Assembly (NCBI RefSeq): GCF_041956535.1 | Contig: NW_027192195.1 | Coordinates: forward strand, 474,150-538,149 | DNA length: 64,000 bases | Source: Calcarisporiella thermophila CBS 279.70 | Taxonomy: Eukaryota; Fungi; Calcarisporiellomycota | Direction of reading: 5' to 3' | Part shown: piece after piece, positions 9,734 to 63,297 of the stretch | Layout of the letters: every line of letters starts with the position of its first letter | How positions within the stretch are numbered: position 1 is the stretch's first letter | Program-made: the position numbers and the translations under genes | Notes under the pieces: generated by a model | Told to the model about the DNA's origin: nothing | Seen by the model: the letters and a program-made list of their open reading frames with translations, nothing else | Database searches by the model: none

Positions 9734-10751
9734 ATGCTCCACTCTCTCCTTTTCTCCCTCGTACGCACCCTCCTCCTCCAATGTTACCCTGCGTATGCAT
9801 CCTATAAAGCGGTTCAACACAATGACCTAGAAACCCTCTCACCTTGGCTGATGTACTGGATTGTGGTGGGCCTATTTGGGATCGCGGAATCCGTTGCTGA
9901 CCTATTCGTGTTTTGGTGAGTGTGATATATTAAGGTGAAGTGGATATCTGGATTGACACTGTGGCTATAGGATTCCGTTTTACTATGAAATCAAGCTATT
10001 ATTCATATTATGGCTCATCTTACCGCAGACGCAGGTAAGCTATCTTACTTCGTTCAATGTTAGATCTATCGCGCGCAACATTAAATGTTATTTTATTTTT
10101 GCTTATTTAGGGATCGGTGTTCCTCTATCGCAGAGTGGTAGAGCCTTATTTCACACAACACGAGCATGAAATAGACAAAACTCTAGCCGAGTATCAAGAG
10201 AGCGCCCGGCGCAAAGGGGCAGATTTAGGACGCAAGGGGCTAACGGCTCTGCAGCGCTTTGCGGTTGAGTCGCTAGTTAAAGCAAGTTTTCGCTCTTTTT
10301 GTTTTTGGCCAACCACTGGATTATATTAACACAATGACGTTGAATTGATATACCATAGGGGCAGCACTTGGTTGCGGACCAGATCGCCCACCAGACATTT
10401 GGCTCTAGTATCCCTCCTCCGTCGACTGAGGGACCACGCTTCACTGAACCACAGCGCTCGTCCAGAAAATACGATCCAGCCCCATCTGGCCCCTCCCAAA
10501 ATTCTAGCCTCGACACGGTCACCAGCTGGGCTGGATGGTTAGCTTCATCAGCAGTCACGGTCACCAGTGCAGCCGTCGTGGCCTCCTCGACCAGGGTGGC
10601 CGAGGCTGCACGTGCAGTTACCACGCCTCGCAAATCGGCTACTTCCTCTAAAGCTTCAGCAGAGGAAGCGCGCAAAATACGAGCGGAGAAGCGACGCGAG
10701 CTGGAAGCCATGTTACGGGAGCTTGAGGACGAAGAGAGCGAGGACCATTGA
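9734..10751 (+). CDS. TB2/DP1/HVA22 (REEP1-4-like) ER-shaping protein
   Basis: YPAYASYKAV...WLMYWIV...WIPFYYEIKLLFILWLILPQTQG; three introns, the third a GC-AG intron (10282-10358). Confidence 0.9.
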
Positions 10752-54100: not shown

Positions 54101-55989
54101 ATGGCGACGGAATTCATCACAACATTCGGCGCGGCGGTTACTGTGCCTGCTGCCTTGCTCACGTATTTTTGGCCTAATCGAGCTATTGGGTCAGACTACC
54201 GCCCCGATATCCCACACCCTCCAGAGTTTCCCTTGGTTGGAAGCTTACCGGACCTTATAGCAATGCAAGGATGCATCCACGATTTTATATCTGCGTAAAT
54301 ATCCTCAAGATCCTATGGCTTAAGAAACTTTTCTAACTTGTTCTGTGTGCAGGGCCCATCAGATCTTAGGCCAGACTTGGTATTTTTTTTTGTTTTTTCT
54401 CGCTACCCTTTCCCCTTTACTCATAGTTCTACACTCTTGGCTTGTTCGTAGGTCCTTCACTGCGCTGCTGTTCCCCCGTCAAATTATGACGATTGATGCG
54501 CGAAATGTGGAGCATGTTCTTAAAAGTAACCCTTGTTGTTTGCCTCCTTCATAGAGTAACCCAAACTCCTACTAACCTTGTCATTTTTACAGATAAATTC
54601 GAAAACTACTCGAAGGGCGATGATTTCCATACCAAAATGTTTGATATGTTCGGTGATGGCATCTTTAATGCCAATGGAGAAAAGTGGCGGTATCAGCGCA
54701 AGACTGCAAGTCATATCTTTAACGTGAAGAATTTCCGTGATTGGTTTACGGGTGTCTTCCTCGACGAGGCGAAAATTGCCTTCAAGATTCTAGACGAGCG
54801 CGCTGCTAACCTCGAAGAAATCGACTTGAACAACTTGTTCTACCGATACACGTTGGAGTCGTTCTTGAAGTAATTATCTTTCTTTTTTTTTTTTGTTTGC
54901 CGCAACTGGCTTTGCTGTAACATCGGTGCTCACTATCTTATTCCCTTGTCTCCTTCCTCTTTTCGCTTGTGTTTCTTATACCAGGATTGGGTTTGGTACT
55001 GCAATTGATGCCATGGATATGTCCAAGGATGTACAATTTGCCAAGTCCTTTGATTTTGTGCAGGTGAGCTAAACTCCTCTGCTTGTCTATTCTGCTCATT
55101 GGAACTAACTTATTTCATTGCAATTTTTAAGAGTGAGATTGGAATTCGTCAAGTTCAGCCTCTTTGGCGTATTACAGAAACCTTCTCCTCGCTCTTCTTC
55201 CCAAGCCGACGATTAAAAAAACACGTTAAGGTGGTAGACGAGTTTGCGCACAAAATCATTCAGGAGCGACGCAATAACCCAGACACGACTAAGCAAGATT
55301 TGCTCTCGCGATTTATTTTCAATACCAAAAATGAAAATGGAGAGCCTCTCAGCGACAAAGAGTTGCGCGATATTGTGCTCAACTTTATTATTGCGGGACG
55401 CGACACCACGGCAGGCACCTTGGCTTGGACATTCTACTGTCTAATGAACCACCCAGAAGTCGAAGCGAAAGTCTACGAGGAGGTGTGTTCACAGATTGGT
55501 GACAGAGACGAGCTGGAGCCGCAGGAGACCTACGAGGTGGTGAAGCGTCTCACCTACACCACCGCAGTATGGAACGAGGTGCTTCGACTCTTCCCGAGCG
55601 TGCCCTTGAACCAGAAGATGGCCATGTCCGACGATTTCCTCCCAGATGGTACGTTTGTGAAGAAGGGTGATCATGTTGTGTGGAGCTCCTACTCAATGGG
55701 TCGCAACGAGGCTATCTGGGGCCCGGATGCCAGAGAATTCAAACCAGAGCGCTGGCTCAAGGAAAATGAGCGCAAGCCATCGGCTTTCGAATGGCCCGCA
55801 TTCAATGCTGGCCCGCGAACCTGCCTTGGGCAGATGCTTGCGACCATTGAGGGCGTGCTCGTGATTGCGCTCCTCGTCAAGCGCTACCGTTTCCGCCTAG
55901 TCCCTGACCAAACTATCATGTATGCTATGAGTCTCACGCTACCCATGAAGGAGGGGATGAAGGTTATCGTGGAGAAGAGAAAACCCTAA
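54101..55989 (+). CDS. Cytochrome P450 (fatty-acid omega-hydroxylase-like, CYP86/704/CYP52-type)
   Basis: FGDGIFNANGEKWRYQRKTASHIF, NFIIAGRDTT, EVLRL, FKPERW, heme motif FNAGPRTCLG. Confidence 0.95.
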
Positions 55990-56593: not shown

Positions 56594-59500
56594 TCAACTC
56601 ATCGATCCATAGGTTCTATTCCATTCCTCATACATGTTTAGATCTTTGTCGGAAACAGACGCACGGACTATAGAAAAAAAATCACAAGTTAGCTTTTACA
56701 ATTATGAAGTGAGAACTAAGTGAGAGTTCTTTTTACTTTGTGTAAGTGCCTCAAGGAAATCCTGGTGCTGAATCGGCCTAACATCCTCCGCTACAACATT
56801 ATTGCAATTGAGATTTAAAAATTGAAATTCAAATCACGTTATGGTTTAATAACTTACCAGAGATGCTTGTAATATCTCTGATGGATCGGATAGGACCTAG
56901 CGCAGCCTCTCTGCAAAGCCCATCCATATCCGAACCAGAGTAACCCTCTGTCAATTTCCCAATGTCCATAATTTCCTCCTCTGTTAAGGAGTGTTTTTGC
57001 CCTTGAAGGAGATTCTTCACTATACTGCATCGAGCTTCGCATTCTGGCAAGGGGATATACAAACGCTTTCGAAACCTTCTTCTTGCCGCCTCATCCAATT
57101 CTTGGGGTCGATTGGTCGCACCTACCACGAGAATACGATCCTTATCTGAGTCAGTGGTAACGCCATCGAACTGAATAAGGAACTCCGTCTTCATGCGGCG
57201 GGTCGCATCAAATTCTCCGTCTGTGCGCTGAGTAAGGAGGGAGTCGATCTCGTCGATAAATACGACAGAAGGCTGGTATACACGCGCAACCGCAAATAGG
57301 GCTCGCACCATTTTCTCTCCATCGCCAACCCACTTAGATGTAAGCGAGGAGGAGCTGATGCTGAAAAAGGTTGCGCCGGACTGGCTCGCAATACATTTGC
57401 CAATCAATGTCTTGCCCGTGCCGGGGGGACCAAATAATAGTAGGCCCTTGGGAGGGCCGCGCAGACCGTAGAAAATATCGGGTCGCATCATTGGCCAAGT
57501 AACGACTTCTTTTATGGTTTTTTTCGCGTGTTCCAGTCCAGCAATATCGTCCCATGAGACAGGCTGCGATTTGTCCATAATTTCATTTTGAATCATCTCT
57601 ATCATCCTCGGCTCAATATTGCGCAGACGCTCATCGGTGGGCTCCATGTCCTGTTCAGAAGGTTTGGACTTAGAGAGAACAGGATTACGCCGGGTGCGAT
57701 TGGTGCTTTCTTGATTGTAAAACCAATAGTCCTTCTTGAGCTGTTCAATATCATCCTCTTCTTCACATTCAGATTGCTTTAGTGGAGGAATGAATTGAGC
57801 TCCTCGCTTATTTGGGTGGGCTGCGCGTTTCCGATCCGGAGTATCCACGTCTGAAGCACTATCTCCCTGAATGACAGCACGTTTACGGCTCTCACTCAAA
57901 ACCTTCTTCATCTCCTGTCTTTCTCCTTTTTCCAATATTGCCTATTGGGTGCATGTTATTTTTTTAGAGTTAAGGAATAGTGTATCCAGAATGCAAAATA
58001 CCAGTTGCTTTGCCGTCACGAAAGGGCTTGTTGTGCCTCCAAGAGGCGCTTCTTCAGTCGGAGAGTTTTCTAATCTGGTTTTCTGCTTCTAAATACTCAG
58101 TTAGATTCTGGCAATAGATTTTTTTTTTAAAAAATAAAAGTATGCATATTTACCGCTTCATTCTGATGAGTAGTAGATTGAGTAATTTCCTGATTTTCGC
58201 TTCCAAAAATTTCCTGTTTCTTGAGATTCATATGGTGACTACTCGGGTTCTGCAAAGACATAGATGCACCTTCCAATTCTCCACTGCCTCTTTGATTTTT
58301 CAGTTTTTCAGCGTTAGGTGTATTGCGAAGATCTTGCCTGAGAGGAGATTTCTTTAGAGCAATTTGGCTTACAACTCCCCCTCTTAAATCTTGATCTTCT
58401 TCAGGCTTGTAAACGGAGTGCGTTGGTCCTTGAGCCTTGTGCTTTCGATCCTGAGGAGATCCCGACACATCTGAGATCTTACTTTGCATTGACGGGAGAG
58501 TTTGTATAGGCTGGGAATTGGGTAGCTGTGAGGAACCTTGCATCCCGCCTTCTCTCTCTTCTTCCTCCTCTTCCTGATATATTGCCCAGATAGGCCGACG
58601 CTCTGATCTCTTTGTTCTACTTGTAATCCCAGTGGAAGTAGACTGCTCTTCGTTGAGGTCACTGGAATAGTCCTCATCGTATCCTGCCTCATCGGCATTC
58701 AATGGTTCATTAAAAGATTCTTTCTCTGCTGGCTGGCTACATAGCTCCTCTTCGCTTTCCATGCTTTCAATCGCGGATCGCTCTATTTGTTGCATCTCTT
58801 GCATCAGACCGCGCATAAGATGCTCCTCAATATATCCATTGGGGAAGCCTGGAAAATAAAATATGATTTGTTGGAATTTACAACAATAGAAAGGAGGAGG
58901 GGAGATACCTTTGCAGTAATCTATAATATTTTTCCACATTTTATTCGATCGCAAGAATTCCGCATTTCCAACCAAAATAAGATGCCGACGAGCACGCGAT
59001 AAAGCTACATTGATTCTCAATGGATTGTTGGCGAAGCCGATTTGCTCAGAGCGTACACATGACAGAATTATAATCTCTCTCTCTGCGCCCTATGCAAAAT
59101 GCTTCCAGTAACGGTCAATAGCTTAAAATTGCTAATATACATACTTGAAATGCATCCACTGTGCTAACTTGAGGAAGGCCTGATTTTTTGTTAGTGCTGG
59201 TATTGCGTTCATTCCCCCCCTGTAGAGCTTTCTCGATTTTGCTTGCCTGCATTTTGTCTTGTTGGAGTTATAGAGTTAGTTACACAAATAATTATCGATG
59301 AGAGCAGTAATGAGGTTTTACAAAGAGCAATGACACCAATCTCCGAGGCTCGCACTTGTAACTCTAGGAGCCGAGTGATGATTCGAATAATTACATCTAT
59401 TTCTCTTTGATTGTACAGAGATTTGGACCCTGGATCGAGTTTTTCCTAATAAAATGGTAGAGACCAAGTCATTTTCCTTAGGTGGGACTCAATATAAATA

Positions 59501-62500
59501 AAGACTAGCTTCTTACATTGCCGGGTATATTGAGAAAACATAAAGTTGGTAGCCCGTTCACAATCGGCGACCGATTTTCGTCACTGACGCCATTCAATAG
59601 ACGCGAAGAGTAAAAGAGTGAGTTGCATACTCCCGCAATCTGTGGGTGACAGCGGTACTGGGTTCGTAACAGTATAGGCTTATGGTTCAACTATCAGAAT
59701 ATCAATGCGTTACTCCATATACATCGAGACATTCGACTGCAAGATACTCACCTCCACCAACCGATTGAATAGTGACCGATCAAGCCCCGAATCAATATTT
59801 TTCAGGTCGCATTTGGTTTGAATCGTTGGGGGAAGCTAAAAATAAGCATAGAATGAAGTTTTGCGTCCGCTATACGATAAATTTTTGCAATTTACCTGAA
59901 GTGGATCTCCCACCATAATCAAACGTTCACATCCAAAACGGCACAAAGGCACAAGAGCCATGGGTTCAGTGATTTGTGATGCCTTTTACAATTAAAAGAG
60001 AAGGTTAGTTTAAATACGGAGCATAAGTGTGTGTTCAACTTGCCTCGTCCAATATTGCAATGCGAAACTTCATATCACCAAAAATATCTAACATGGACGC
60101 CATACAAGTCGTACCTATCCATGCATTTAGTCACTCCAGCTCTAGAGCCTATTAGAGAAAAATATATACACACCAACCACCAAAGCGCGTTTAAGGAGCT
60201 GCTGATTCTCACTCTGCTTGAATCGTCGTATGGTTTCCTGTACAAGGCGACGCTCACTTGACGATATCTGGTCATCATCGAGTATAGATTTAAGTTCTTT
60301 GAGTTCTATATCCGAAAATGAAAATAAAGTCATATGGTGAGACACAATAAGTAACGTAACAAATTCATATATGTACCTTCATCACTGGATTGTCTTCGTT
60401 GAGCGGTAAAGGGTAAAATTCGTTTCGCAATCTTTTTTATACTATTAAAGAAAAAACAAAAGTAAGCGCTGGAGTCTTTAGGCGCTATAGCGATTATACC
60501 TTCCAACGCGTGCAAACTCTTCAAATTCAAGATCCAGTAGTTGTAGTAATATTCGATCCACTGCTACGTTCTATCAGTAAATATTAAGAATACCAATTTT
60601 AGGCTTCACGTATAAAAAAACTACTATACCGTTATTGAAGTTATAAGTATTTGAAAAGGGTAAGCAAATTCTTCCACGGCATCGTCGGCATCATTGTCAT
60701 TAGACTTAGTAGAGCGATGTATAAGCTGAAAAACTCTTTGCACGAAAATGACTAGCACAGCTATTAAATAGCTGAAAGAAAATTTGTTGTTCCAATATTA
60801 TTCTTTTATGATAATAGGTCTCAACTAACCTCTTGCCAGCTCCAAAAACACCTTTTTGAGATATGATTGAGTGATCTATGCTATTTTGGATGAAGAATGC
60901 AATAGCTTACCGTGAACCAGGAATATGGGGGATGGAGGTGATTCACTGTTAATTGCGGCAATAATTCCCTCAGAAAAACGCCTCAAAACGCTATTCTCCG
61001 GTATAGAGTAAGGTATTATTTCTTTATAACATCACAAGAAGAAAAATTGACACACCTGGTTTGGTCCTCGTTCAAATGGTAATCCAAAATGGTTCTTTCA
61101 ATGACATCTTGCAATCCAATTTCCATTGCTTCTTCGGCACTCATCAAAGGTAAAGTGCGACTTTTAATAGGAATAATAAGAGGAGGCTTGAATCTTCCAG
61201 GTCCTACAGGTCCAGCTAAAATATTTTGTGCATCGTGAGAATGTTTGAGTATTAGAGGCAGCAGCGGAGAATTAGTAAGGCATTCTCGAAGATTGTCTTT
61301 TATATAGGGAAGTTAGATATCAATATAAATGCATGAATATTATATCCTATACCAAGCATCATCATCTCAGCATTCACGTTGATTAGTCTAAGCGCAAATA
61401 CACGCTGGGTATTTTTCGCGAGTGATCTAGCAATCTCAGAGTCTCGAGGAAATATACATTGAATCTATATATATATGTAAAATTTGGAATCGTAACAAAA
61501 ATGCTCACTAAAAGCAAACTGTGTATAGACAATCGACTCACTTCAAGGGTAGAATCGCTAAAAGGGCCATAAAATGTGCTGCGAGCCAAAAAAGTGGACG
61601 CAGGTTCGAAATCTACAGAAGAGGAGACGACCCACATATCATCTTATGGAATGGAGGTAAACGCATGATTTTGGAGCCCAAAATTACTATATAAAAATAT
61701 CAAGAATATATACCTTTCGAGTAACTATGAGGAAATGACAGATATCAGTGTTAATATAGGTAAGCACCATATCAACTCCTAATCAATTGAAATTTACACT
61801 GAGTGATGCTCTTTTTCAGAGAGCTGCAAAAGTACAATCTCTAGCTCTACGCACACATCAGAGAATAGTTCACTCGAGTTGGGATAGCTGCTACTATCCA
61901 TATTTCGTCCAAGGGTCGGGAATATATTCTGAGGTGATGCCAATCTGTTATGTTTGAGAAATCGCTCAAAATTAAGATCAAGTGAAAACTGCTTTTTAAG
62001 TTAGATTCACCTCAAGCCGCATCCCTTATAAAAGCCCATTCCATGTGATCGGAAATAGTATTCCACATTGTTAATATTTGGCATCTTCTGCTTGTTATAT
62101 TTGTCGAAGAGCATCCGGAATTGGATCGACAAGGTATTAAGAAGTATTTGCAAGTGTTCATAGATGGCATGGGTGAATATCTCTCTATATTGTAGAGCAG
62201 ACGACTAGAAAAATATCAAGAATGTGTCAGAGAGTATTTTAATAGTATCAAATCGATGCATCATTCTCACAAAAAGGGTAGGTATTCGTGCGCGACGTAT
62301 TAAATGCTCCTTGTTCCGTACTAGTAATTCGCAATGAGAAATACTCGGAAATTCCAAGCTTAATGGGGATGATCTAAATATTCGATATAGAATAAGTTCA
62401 CTGTAATACTCCACAAGAGACTCTATGCATACTTGAAAATATTCTTCAGTGGTACCGGTGTTGGCGTTTTAATGGTATCACTAGTGTTGGAGGGGACAAG

Positions 62501-63297
62501 AGAATTCAGTCACAATCACTATCATTTGTATACATTAAATAGAAATATGGACGATAAATCACCCCTCCTTAACTTCGCTGGTAATTTTTCCATTAGGTTT
62601 AAGTAACGCACGTGAGGAGACTATGTCAACTGTATTCTCAGCGGTTCTTTCGGTAGTATTGGTAGCGGACAATGGAGTGTTAAAGGAAGTGGGCCTATTA
62701 AGCCCAATTTTTCTTCGCTTTACTGACGGTATTACTCCTTCTACCGGCTTTACCAGGTTCTCGTTCGATGATTTGAGTGATTCAACTGTAACTAGGTGTC
62801 GATCAAACTCAAGTTCATCGCCAACGGAAATAGTGCGACCCTTTGCGAACAAGCTGAGTCCAAAAACATTATTTGATGATTATGAGGAGAAAATCATATA
62901 TATATGAATTGTACCTATCGATCTTAGTATTATTGTCATCATATAGAACGATCTGTTGGAGAAAAAATCGCGAGGTGAACAAAAGTATTGGTTATTTGGA
63001 ATGAGTTTATATTAATTAAACAAATGTTATGTGTGAATATAAAATATATATACCTTGGCATTAGAGCTGAAATATTTCAAGAAGCCTAAAGAGAGAAGAG
63101 CGCGGATAATGTTGGATTAGAAGATCATGCACGGAAATGGGAAATATGATTGTGAATGGGATATGAATTCGAAAATAAATTTCAAATGAAAAGTATCCCG
63201 TACCGTCTTGCCACACTTTTGTCTTCTTGTGTTTCTGAGAAGTGTACAGAACAACATAATGTTCAAAAGAATCGTCCGATTCGGAATTCGCTTTCAT
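56594..63297 (-). CDS. Putative fusion protein: DUF2439 + ZGRF1-type Upf1-like SF1 helicase + acidic linker + FIGNL1-type RAD51-binding region and AAA+ ATPase
   Basis: [19 protein letters not shown] (DUF2439); helicase motifs VHG|VFGAGK, NVAVDR, LDE|[50 protein letters not shown]; then [59 protein letters not shown]. Linking exon 58002-58088 is in frame. Confidence 0.8.

Follow-up and report, generated by a model that had tools for sequence, protein, structure and literature searches.

A predicted single gene joining a ZGRF1-type helicase to a FIGNL1-type AAA+ ATPase in the fungus Calcarisporiella thermophila

It is an open question how the removal of RAD51 from DNA is coordinated with the processing of recombination intermediates by helicases. 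A locus of the early-diverging fungus Calcarisporiella thermophila CBS 279.70 raises this question at the level of a gene, as the coding sequences of a ZGRF1-type helicase and of a FIGNL1-type AAA+ ATPase follow one another there on the same strand, and it has to be asked whether they are two genes or one. The locus lies within a stretch of 64,000 nucleotides (nt) of contig NW_027192195.1 (positions 474,150 to 538,149), which is called the window below and to which all coordinates refer unless another contig is named. An original prediction, made from the letters of this stretch, had proposed that the two coding sequences are fused in frame. Judged from the sequence, a single fused gene encoding a protein of about 1,650 amino acids (aa) is the simplest and best model for the locus, and we give it a probability of roughly 0.65. 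At the level of the DNA, it is established that the frame is continuous, that both halves are intact and what they are, and that the exon at their junction is authentic; from this we infer a full-length transcript, a protein, and any activity that the fusion may have. The features of the locus, with a slash marking the position of an intron here and in the text, are as follows.

56594 to 63297, minus strand: proposed gene, ZGRF1-like helicase, tail and FIGNL1-like AAA+ ATPase (open spliced chain with hand-checked junctions)
62780 to 63297, minus strand: ZGRF1-like_N (DUF2439) domain (PF10382 profile match)
58909 to 61312, minus strand: Upf1-like SF1B helicase core (AAA_11 and AAA_12 pieces in profile order, motifs intact)
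59983 to 60043, minus strand: GC-AG intron of 61 nt (GCAAGT, CTAAC, AAAAG) dividing helicase motif II, ILDE/ASQ
58849 to 58908, minus strand: candidate intron of 60 nt, T-rich, GTATCT to TTCCAG, phase 1, directly after the helicase fold
58154 to 58848, minus strand: Glu-, Ser- and Gln-rich tail or linker, 231 codons, in which no domain was recognised (stop-free frame)
58089 to 58153, minus strand: intron A, 65 nt, with a GTAAAT donor, CTAAC branch and TTTAG acceptor (splice signals)
58002 to 58088, minus strand: FxxA exon, 87 nt, phase 0, with FVTA at 58011 to 58022 (aligned to the FIGNL1 orthologue motif F-x-[ST]-A-[KR]-x-Q)
57942 to 58001, minus strand: intron B, 60 nt, GTATTT to AATAG, phase 0 (position common to other FIGNL1 genes)
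56858 to 57941, minus strand: main FIGNL1 exon, with FIPP, AAA domain and AAA lid (PF00004, PF17862)
56737 to 56790 and 56594 to 56667, minus strand: terminal FIGNL1 exons (peptide matches the orthologue consensus)
56791 to 56857 and 56668 to 56736, minus strand: introns upstream of and between the terminal exons (junctions read)

The proposed gene is read as a spliced chain that stays open on the minus strand from an ATG at 63297 to a TGA at 56594 to 56596. It is made up of about 26 to 28 exons and encodes roughly 1,650 aa (the crude chained model has 1,671 residues), with an exon map that is approximate only between 62500 and 61300. Ten introns of the locus, 51 to 118 nt in length, have homology support. 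The Pfam domains found along the locus are ZGRF1-like_N, AAA_11, AAA_12, AAA, and AAA_lid_3. A fused gene is the simplest model for this arrangement because no AT-rich intergenic DNA lies between the halves, the frame is open and in phase throughout, and the exon that joins them is of FIGNL1 type.

The joining exon is the most informative part of the junction. It carries the motif FVTAKQL about 45 residues before FIPPL, a spacing that is also seen in orthologues (FVTAKQ..FNPPL, FISARQ..FNPPL, FLTARQ..FVPPF). The intron that follows it, intron B, is matched in position and phase in the FIGNL1 gene of Thamnocephalis (L010; FMSAKQL/GTACGC..TAG/AAIQDARR), and the same intron is found in FIGNL1 of two metagenome contigs (L011 and L017; FISAKEQL/GTAAAG..TAG/AIDERLQ and FKSARVEL/GTAATA). 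This position, shared among fungal-type lineages, identifies intron B as an old FIGNL1 intron rather than a chance GT-AG pair. These comparisons show that the 87-nt exon truly codes for FIGNL1 and carries a predicted RAD51-binding FxxA motif, and the exon that comes after intron B continues in the frame of the 368-codon AAA open reading frame (ORF). That ORF had been said to begin only at a TTG, which is correct: its mechanical start is the TTG at 57935, and the first ATG follows at 57911 (MKKVL). Translation of FIGNL1 from MKKVL was considered and rejected, as it would drop the conserved FxxA exon. The FxxA exon is also symmetrical, with phase 0 at both ends, and its skipping would give an in-frame isoform that is devoid of the main RAD51-binding motif.

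Where, then, does translation of the FIGNL1 half start? The FxxA exon contains no ATG and must be reached by splicing to its acceptor at 58088. From an open frame that contains an ATG, two phase-compatible donors are available in the helicase frame, at 58153 (giving the 65-nt intron A) and at 58372 (giving an intron of 284 nt), while a third lies in another frame and would require an intron of 394 nt. The only short one is that at 58153. With no ATG in the exon itself and only these donors to supply one, FIGNL1 translation must start within the helicase ORF. Intron A and intron B, at 65 and 60 nt and with GTA-type donors, resemble the ten introns of the locus that have homology support. As 65 is not a multiple of three (it leaves a remainder of 2), the frame is preserved only if intron A is spliced. 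Intron A contains in-frame stops, and its retention ends the helicase frame at 58127 to 58129. Its splice signals are on a par with any at the locus, and when it is spliced the product runs on to the FIGNL1 stop at 56594.

Upstream of intron A, the frame that carries helicase motif VI remains open from 59089 to the stop at 58127 to 58129. Over the 231 codons between 58154 and 58846 there is no stop in the helicase frame, compared with 8 and 15 in the other two, and the probability of such a stop-free run calculated from base composition is about 9e-7. The GC content of the tail is 0.41 to 0.48, which is that of an exon, while intergenic DNA in the window has values of 0.31 to 0.34. The tail is therefore coding in the helicase frame, and there is no room between the halves for a terminator and a promoter. 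In these respects the original prediction stands: the frame does stay open past the last helicase motif, the two introns and the 87-nt phase-0 exon between them are present in the sequence as described, and the proposed lack of intergenic space is borne out by the stop-free tail and its exon-like composition.

What the tail encodes is less clear-cut. It was compared with the N-termini of FIGNL1 proteins, and similarity was not detected (E-values above 0.8). The distance from the end of the helicase fold to FxxA is about 250 residues, which equals the length of the N-terminal region that precedes FxxA in stand-alone fungal FIGNL1. The tail may be either a linker or a diverged FIGNL1 N-terminal region, and the latter is preferred because of this match in length. 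It had been suggested that the helicase replaces the N-terminal targeting region of FIGNL1; this part of the prediction is not upheld, since the residues before FxxA may be that very region in diverged form. The candidate intron directly after the helicase fold may mark the old boundary between two genes. It is itself stop-free, so the frame is kept whether it is spliced or retained, and retention would add 20 hydrophobic residues. A second ORF that begins with an ATG (104 codons, 58384 to 58698, minus strand) runs through the tail in an alternative frame and would encode a basic peptide; its presence is probably incidental to the purine richness of the coding sequence.

The identity of the upstream half follows from its domains. 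The ZGRF1-like_N domain is complete across four exons whose splice sites could be read (63297 to 63204, 63085 to 63054, 62952 to 62915, and from 62853 onward), and exon 1 scores 30.4 bits against PF10382, with a cut-off of 23. This gene holds the sole PF10382 match in the 28-megabase genome. In the helicase core, positions 222 to 249 of the AAA_11 profile are found at 59839 to 59985, and positions 15 to 55, 82 to 117, and 149 to 194 of AAA_12 follow in order at 59505 to 59690, 59212 to 59445, and 58901 to 59089. The SF1B motifs are all intact (GVFGAGK/S, TNVAVD, ILDE/ASQ, VGDPLQ/LPP, QYRCHP, STVDAFQ/GAERE, and motif VI). Walker A, GVFGAGK/S, is interrupted by the intron at 60829 to 60772, and for the GC-AG intron within motif II no GT donor was found that would restore the DEASQ motif. 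The solved structures nearest to the core are those of UPF1, NAM7, and SEN1, and their fold stops near 58910. On the evidence of these domains and motifs, the upstream half is a ZGRF1-type helicase, with predicted 5'-3' helicase activity and interaction with RAD51.

Animal ZGRF1 has the same layout, with an N-terminal ZGRF1-like_N/DUF2439 domain and a C-terminal Upf1-like SF1B helicase made up of AAA_11 and AAA_12. The yeast proteins Mte1 and Dbl2 have ZGRF1-like_N/DUF2439 in common with the gene described here and carry no helicase (PMC4909299). The gene differs from animal ZGRF1 in that it has no GRF zinc finger and in that the helicase is not the end of the protein, which continues into FIGNL1. 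The zinc finger profile PF06839 is absent from the gene, and the four zf-GRF matches of the genome are on other contigs. Three of these stand in tandem on contig C24 (261341 to 261974) and the fourth lies on contig C31 (83426 to 83563), and the genome has no GRF zinc fingers besides; none is linked to the ZGRF1-like gene.

The downstream half can be assigned in the same way. Its main exon carries FIPP at 57783 to 57794 and an AAA domain at about 57048 to 57443, with Walker A GPPGTGKT and Walker B FIDEID. The AAA profile PF00004 matches with an E-value of 2e-38, and PF17862 is matched as well. Human FIGNL1 (3d8b, 8r64) gives 415 bits compared with 322 for spastin, and the AAA domain is about 75% identical to that of human FIGNL1. 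The closest named relatives are fidgetin-like 1 proteins of chytrids, Zoopagomycota, Mortierellomycota, Glomeromycota, and animals. The FIGNL1 half is present as a single copy, with the next paralogue in the genome at 39% identity. By peptide comparison, the terminal exons match the consensus ..VRPI..DF..AL.QVRASVS.KDL..YLEWN...GS, which corresponds to the Vps4_C-type C-terminal helix; orthologues carry PF09336 here. The downstream half is thus, by sequence comparison, a true FIGNL1 orthologue, predicted to remove RAD51 and DMC1 in an ATP-dependent manner. With FIGNL1/FIGL1 of animals, plants, and early-diverging fungi it shares the AAA+ domain, the Walker A and B motifs, the pore-loop region, the upstream FxxA and FxPP motifs, the C-terminal helix (..VRASVS.KDL..YEEWN..YGS), and its single-copy state. 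It differs from them in lacking its own start codon ahead of the FxxA exon, with coding that continues upstream into the helicase ORF, and the N-terminal FIRRM-binding domain is not recognised. The naming of the two halves in the original prediction is supported by the Pfam matches, the motifs, and the bit scores alike.

Is the same arrangement found in other organisms? A search of representatives of 1.8 billion proteins was made with no limit on length, and the best 150 of 91,205 matches were considered. These are ordinary FIGNL1 proteins of 320 to 810 aa, the remainder being tandem-AAA proteins. Matches of 900 to 2,100 aa were considered as possible helicase fusions and rejected, since they are Cdc48-, FtsH-, katanin-, or TPR-type proteins with tandem AAA domains. 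The genomic surroundings of FIGNL1 were also compared at 20 loci, which were those of Bifiguratus, Entophlyctis, Thamnocephalis, Basidiobolus, Dimargaris, Rhizophagus, and Amphiamblys, one Logan contig, and 12 metagenome contigs, and their flanks were searched with each helicase exon. A ZGRF1-FIGNL1 fusion was not described in the literature that was searched. If real, the architecture is, as far as these comparisons reach, a new and lineage-specific one.

Several of these results weigh against a single gene. No fused homologue was found among the best 150 of the 91,205 representatives, and the Atlas clusters hold no fusion, only clusters of ordinary FIGNL1, katanin, and fidgetin. A ZGRF1-like helicase lies upstream of FIGNL1 in none of the 20 foreign loci, and the collections contain no relative nearer than about 80% identity in the AAA domain. 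With the fusion missing from the 20 loci and from the best 150 representatives, and with no closer relative to compare, the architecture rests on a single genome. Nor was a long protein with 100% identity among the results of the length-unlimited search, an absence that is not interpretable. Within the locus itself, eight in-frame ATGs follow the helicase fold (58816, 58804, 58795, 58762, 58543, 58489, 58261, and 58231), of which 58762 has good context (GAAAGCATGG), and the distance from the tail ATGs to FxxA is the N-terminal length of an ordinary FIGNL1. Together these ATGs and the usual N-terminal length would allow a FIGNL1-only mRNA from an internal promoter. Finally, intron A contains a run of T followed by a run of A, which is a potential polyadenylation region.

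The alternative that best survives builds on these points. It holds that the locus consists of two overlapping units on the same strand, in which FIGNL1 is made mainly from an mRNA of its own that starts in the 3' part of the helicase gene, the helicase ends at 58127, and a read-through fusion is minor or absent. FIGNL1 would then start at 58762 or 58816, giving about 635 to 653 aa, or at 58231, giving about 458 aa, and the helicase would come from transcripts in which intron A is retained or supplies the polyadenylation site. The eight ATGs and the T- and A-runs of intron A would be put to use in this arrangement, a product that begins between 58762 and 58816 would have the usual FIGNL1 length of 600 to 700 aa, and FIGNL1 is a stand-alone gene at all the other loci compared. 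We nevertheless consider overlapping units unlikely, at something like one chance in a handful. There is no non-coding or AT-rich DNA in which a terminator and promoter could lie. Any functional helicase product must reach at least 58127 and thereby carries the FIGNL1 N-terminal stretch, so a separate helicase protein would keep the whole of those approximately 240 residues. Helicase transcripts that reach 58089 hold strong splice signals, by which they would be spliced into the fusion frame. The annotation points the same way. The genome's own gene models are present in the protein collection (P0377, described below, is one), and no model of 202 to 644 aa with a 100% match to the AAA ORF was found in it, which excludes an annotated stand-alone FIGNL1 that starts from 57911, 58231, 58261, 58489, 58543, or 58762. 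A model of 646 to 653 aa, like a fused model, would escape a search over 202 to 644 aa, and the hint against a stand-alone FIGNL1 is therefore a weak one.

A second alternative is that the continuity is not a property of a working gene. It could be due to an assembly or base-calling error near 58850 to 58910, or to a recent deletion that is functionless and confined to this strain. The fusion is known from one genome only, and stops in other frames are close by (a TAA at about 58880 and a TGA at about 58806), so that an error of 1 nt would be enough to terminate the helicase there. Such an error or accident is improbable to a degree that we would put well below that of overlapping units, as more than one base is involved: the whole intergenic region would have to be deleted, 231 further codons remain open and lead into FIGNL1 in exact phase by way of two canonical introns, and both halves are fully intact. 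Least credible is that FIGNL1 has a first exon to itself in a different reading frame of the tail, from an ATG at 58698 to a GTAAGA donor at 58482 (72 codons), by which the two proteins would share DNA and not sequence, for although it is the sole phase-compatible option with its own ATG and falls in the 104-codon ORF at 58384 to 58698, its 394-nt intron would be three to eight times as long as the other introns of the locus (51 to 118 nt) and the stop-free helicase frame from 58482 to 58154 would be left unexplained.

Returning to the single fused gene, its origin can be pictured as the loss, in a fungal lineage, of the helicase stop codon and of the intergenic DNA behind it, such that ZGRF1 would read into the adjacent FIGNL1 downstream. 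The protein would then be made up, in order, of ZGRF1-like_N, an SF1B helicase that lacks a GRF zinc finger, about 250 disordered acidic residues, the FxxA/FxPP region, and an AAA+ unfoldase with its C-terminal helix. By analogy with what has been shown for human FIGNL1, the AAA+ part may assemble into a hexamer, grip RAD51 through FxxA and FxPP, and strip it from DNA. The tethered 5'-3' helicase would meanwhile translocate on, or unwind, the same recombination intermediate, and processing of D-loops or branches could in this way be coupled to RAD51 removal with no need for a FIRRM adaptor. We would place only slightly better than even odds on this functional picture as a whole, that is, on one polypeptide forming a hexameric ring with up to six helicase arms, on covalent coupling of D-loop or branch processing to RAD51 removal in the absence of FIRRM, and on the locus as Rosetta-stone evidence for a ZGRF1-FIGNL1 module.

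A joint action of ZGRF1 and FIGNL1, which the original prediction also proposed, is in keeping with published observations in vertebrates. Zgrf1 is among the proteins most enriched on Rad51-coated DNA, according to a preprint of October 2026 (bioRxiv 10.64898/2026.10.19.760033), and in Xenopus egg extract it is enriched in Firrm-Fignl1 pull-downs (bioRxiv 10.64898/2026.10.19.760033). Structure prediction in the same preprint docks Zgrf1 on Firrm (bioRxiv 10.64898/2026.10.19.760033), and it is only there that Zgrf1 has been reported to be physically linked to Firrm-Fignl1. The vertebrate assembly of Firrm-Fignl1 and Zgrf1 unites the same three activities as the predicted fusion, namely RAD51 binding, AAA+ unloading, and the ZGRF1 helicase. 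In vertebrates, however, the proteins are not joined covalently and Firrm is the adaptor predicted to mediate their contact, whereas here the link would be covalent and in a lineage with no detectable Firrm. The FIRRM profile PF14868 (DUF4487) gave no match in the genome, and the control genomes gave none either. FIGL1 has been lost in Dikarya, and FLIP/FIRRM is reported to be missing from fungi at large (PMC5897033). The lack of FLIP/FIRRM here is therefore nothing peculiar to the fusion, and its loss was rejected as a specific correlate of the fusion.

If true, a covalent ZGRF1-FIGNL1 protein in a fungus that lacks FIRRM would be the Rosetta-stone counterpart of the Firrm-Fignl1-Zgrf1 complex, and would give independent evolutionary evidence that ZGRF1 and FIGNL1 work simultaneously on a common substrate. 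Biochemistry and cryo-electron microscopy would gain from it a model protein that is a single chain and free of FIRRM, and a testable question of stoichiometry would arise, with six helicases to each AAA+ ring. Should the fusion turn out not to be expressed, the locus would still present two recombination genes that have no spacer between them, and a caution for gene prediction.

A further caution concerns the annotation of FIGNL1 in other fungi, where many models are shortened and miss the exon for RAD51 binding. Annotated models of 282 to 370 aa look shortened at the N-terminus. On Thamnocephalis sphaerospora KZ992527.1 (L010, 9600 to 10110), the coding sequence for FMSAKQL (FxxA) and FVPPLL (FxPP) precedes the start of the annotated gene. 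In Basidiobolus, Dimargaris, and Rhizophagus (L023, L024, and L025, just upstream of position 10001), similarity to the query starts 125 to 205 nt before the annotated start.

Two other genes of the window were noted. A cytochrome P450-like gene (..FNAGPRTCLGQ..) is represented by its C-terminal part at 55099 to 55989 on the plus strand, convergent with the 3' end of FIGNL1, and an AT-rich spacer of about 600 nt separates the two. At the far end of the window, a plus-strand ORF at 75 to 2378 encodes a TIG/IPT domain and ankyrin repeats and is part of the annotated 1,152-aa protein P0377. No other protein in the collection matches P0377 at an E-value below 1e-70, which underlines the isolation of this lineage.

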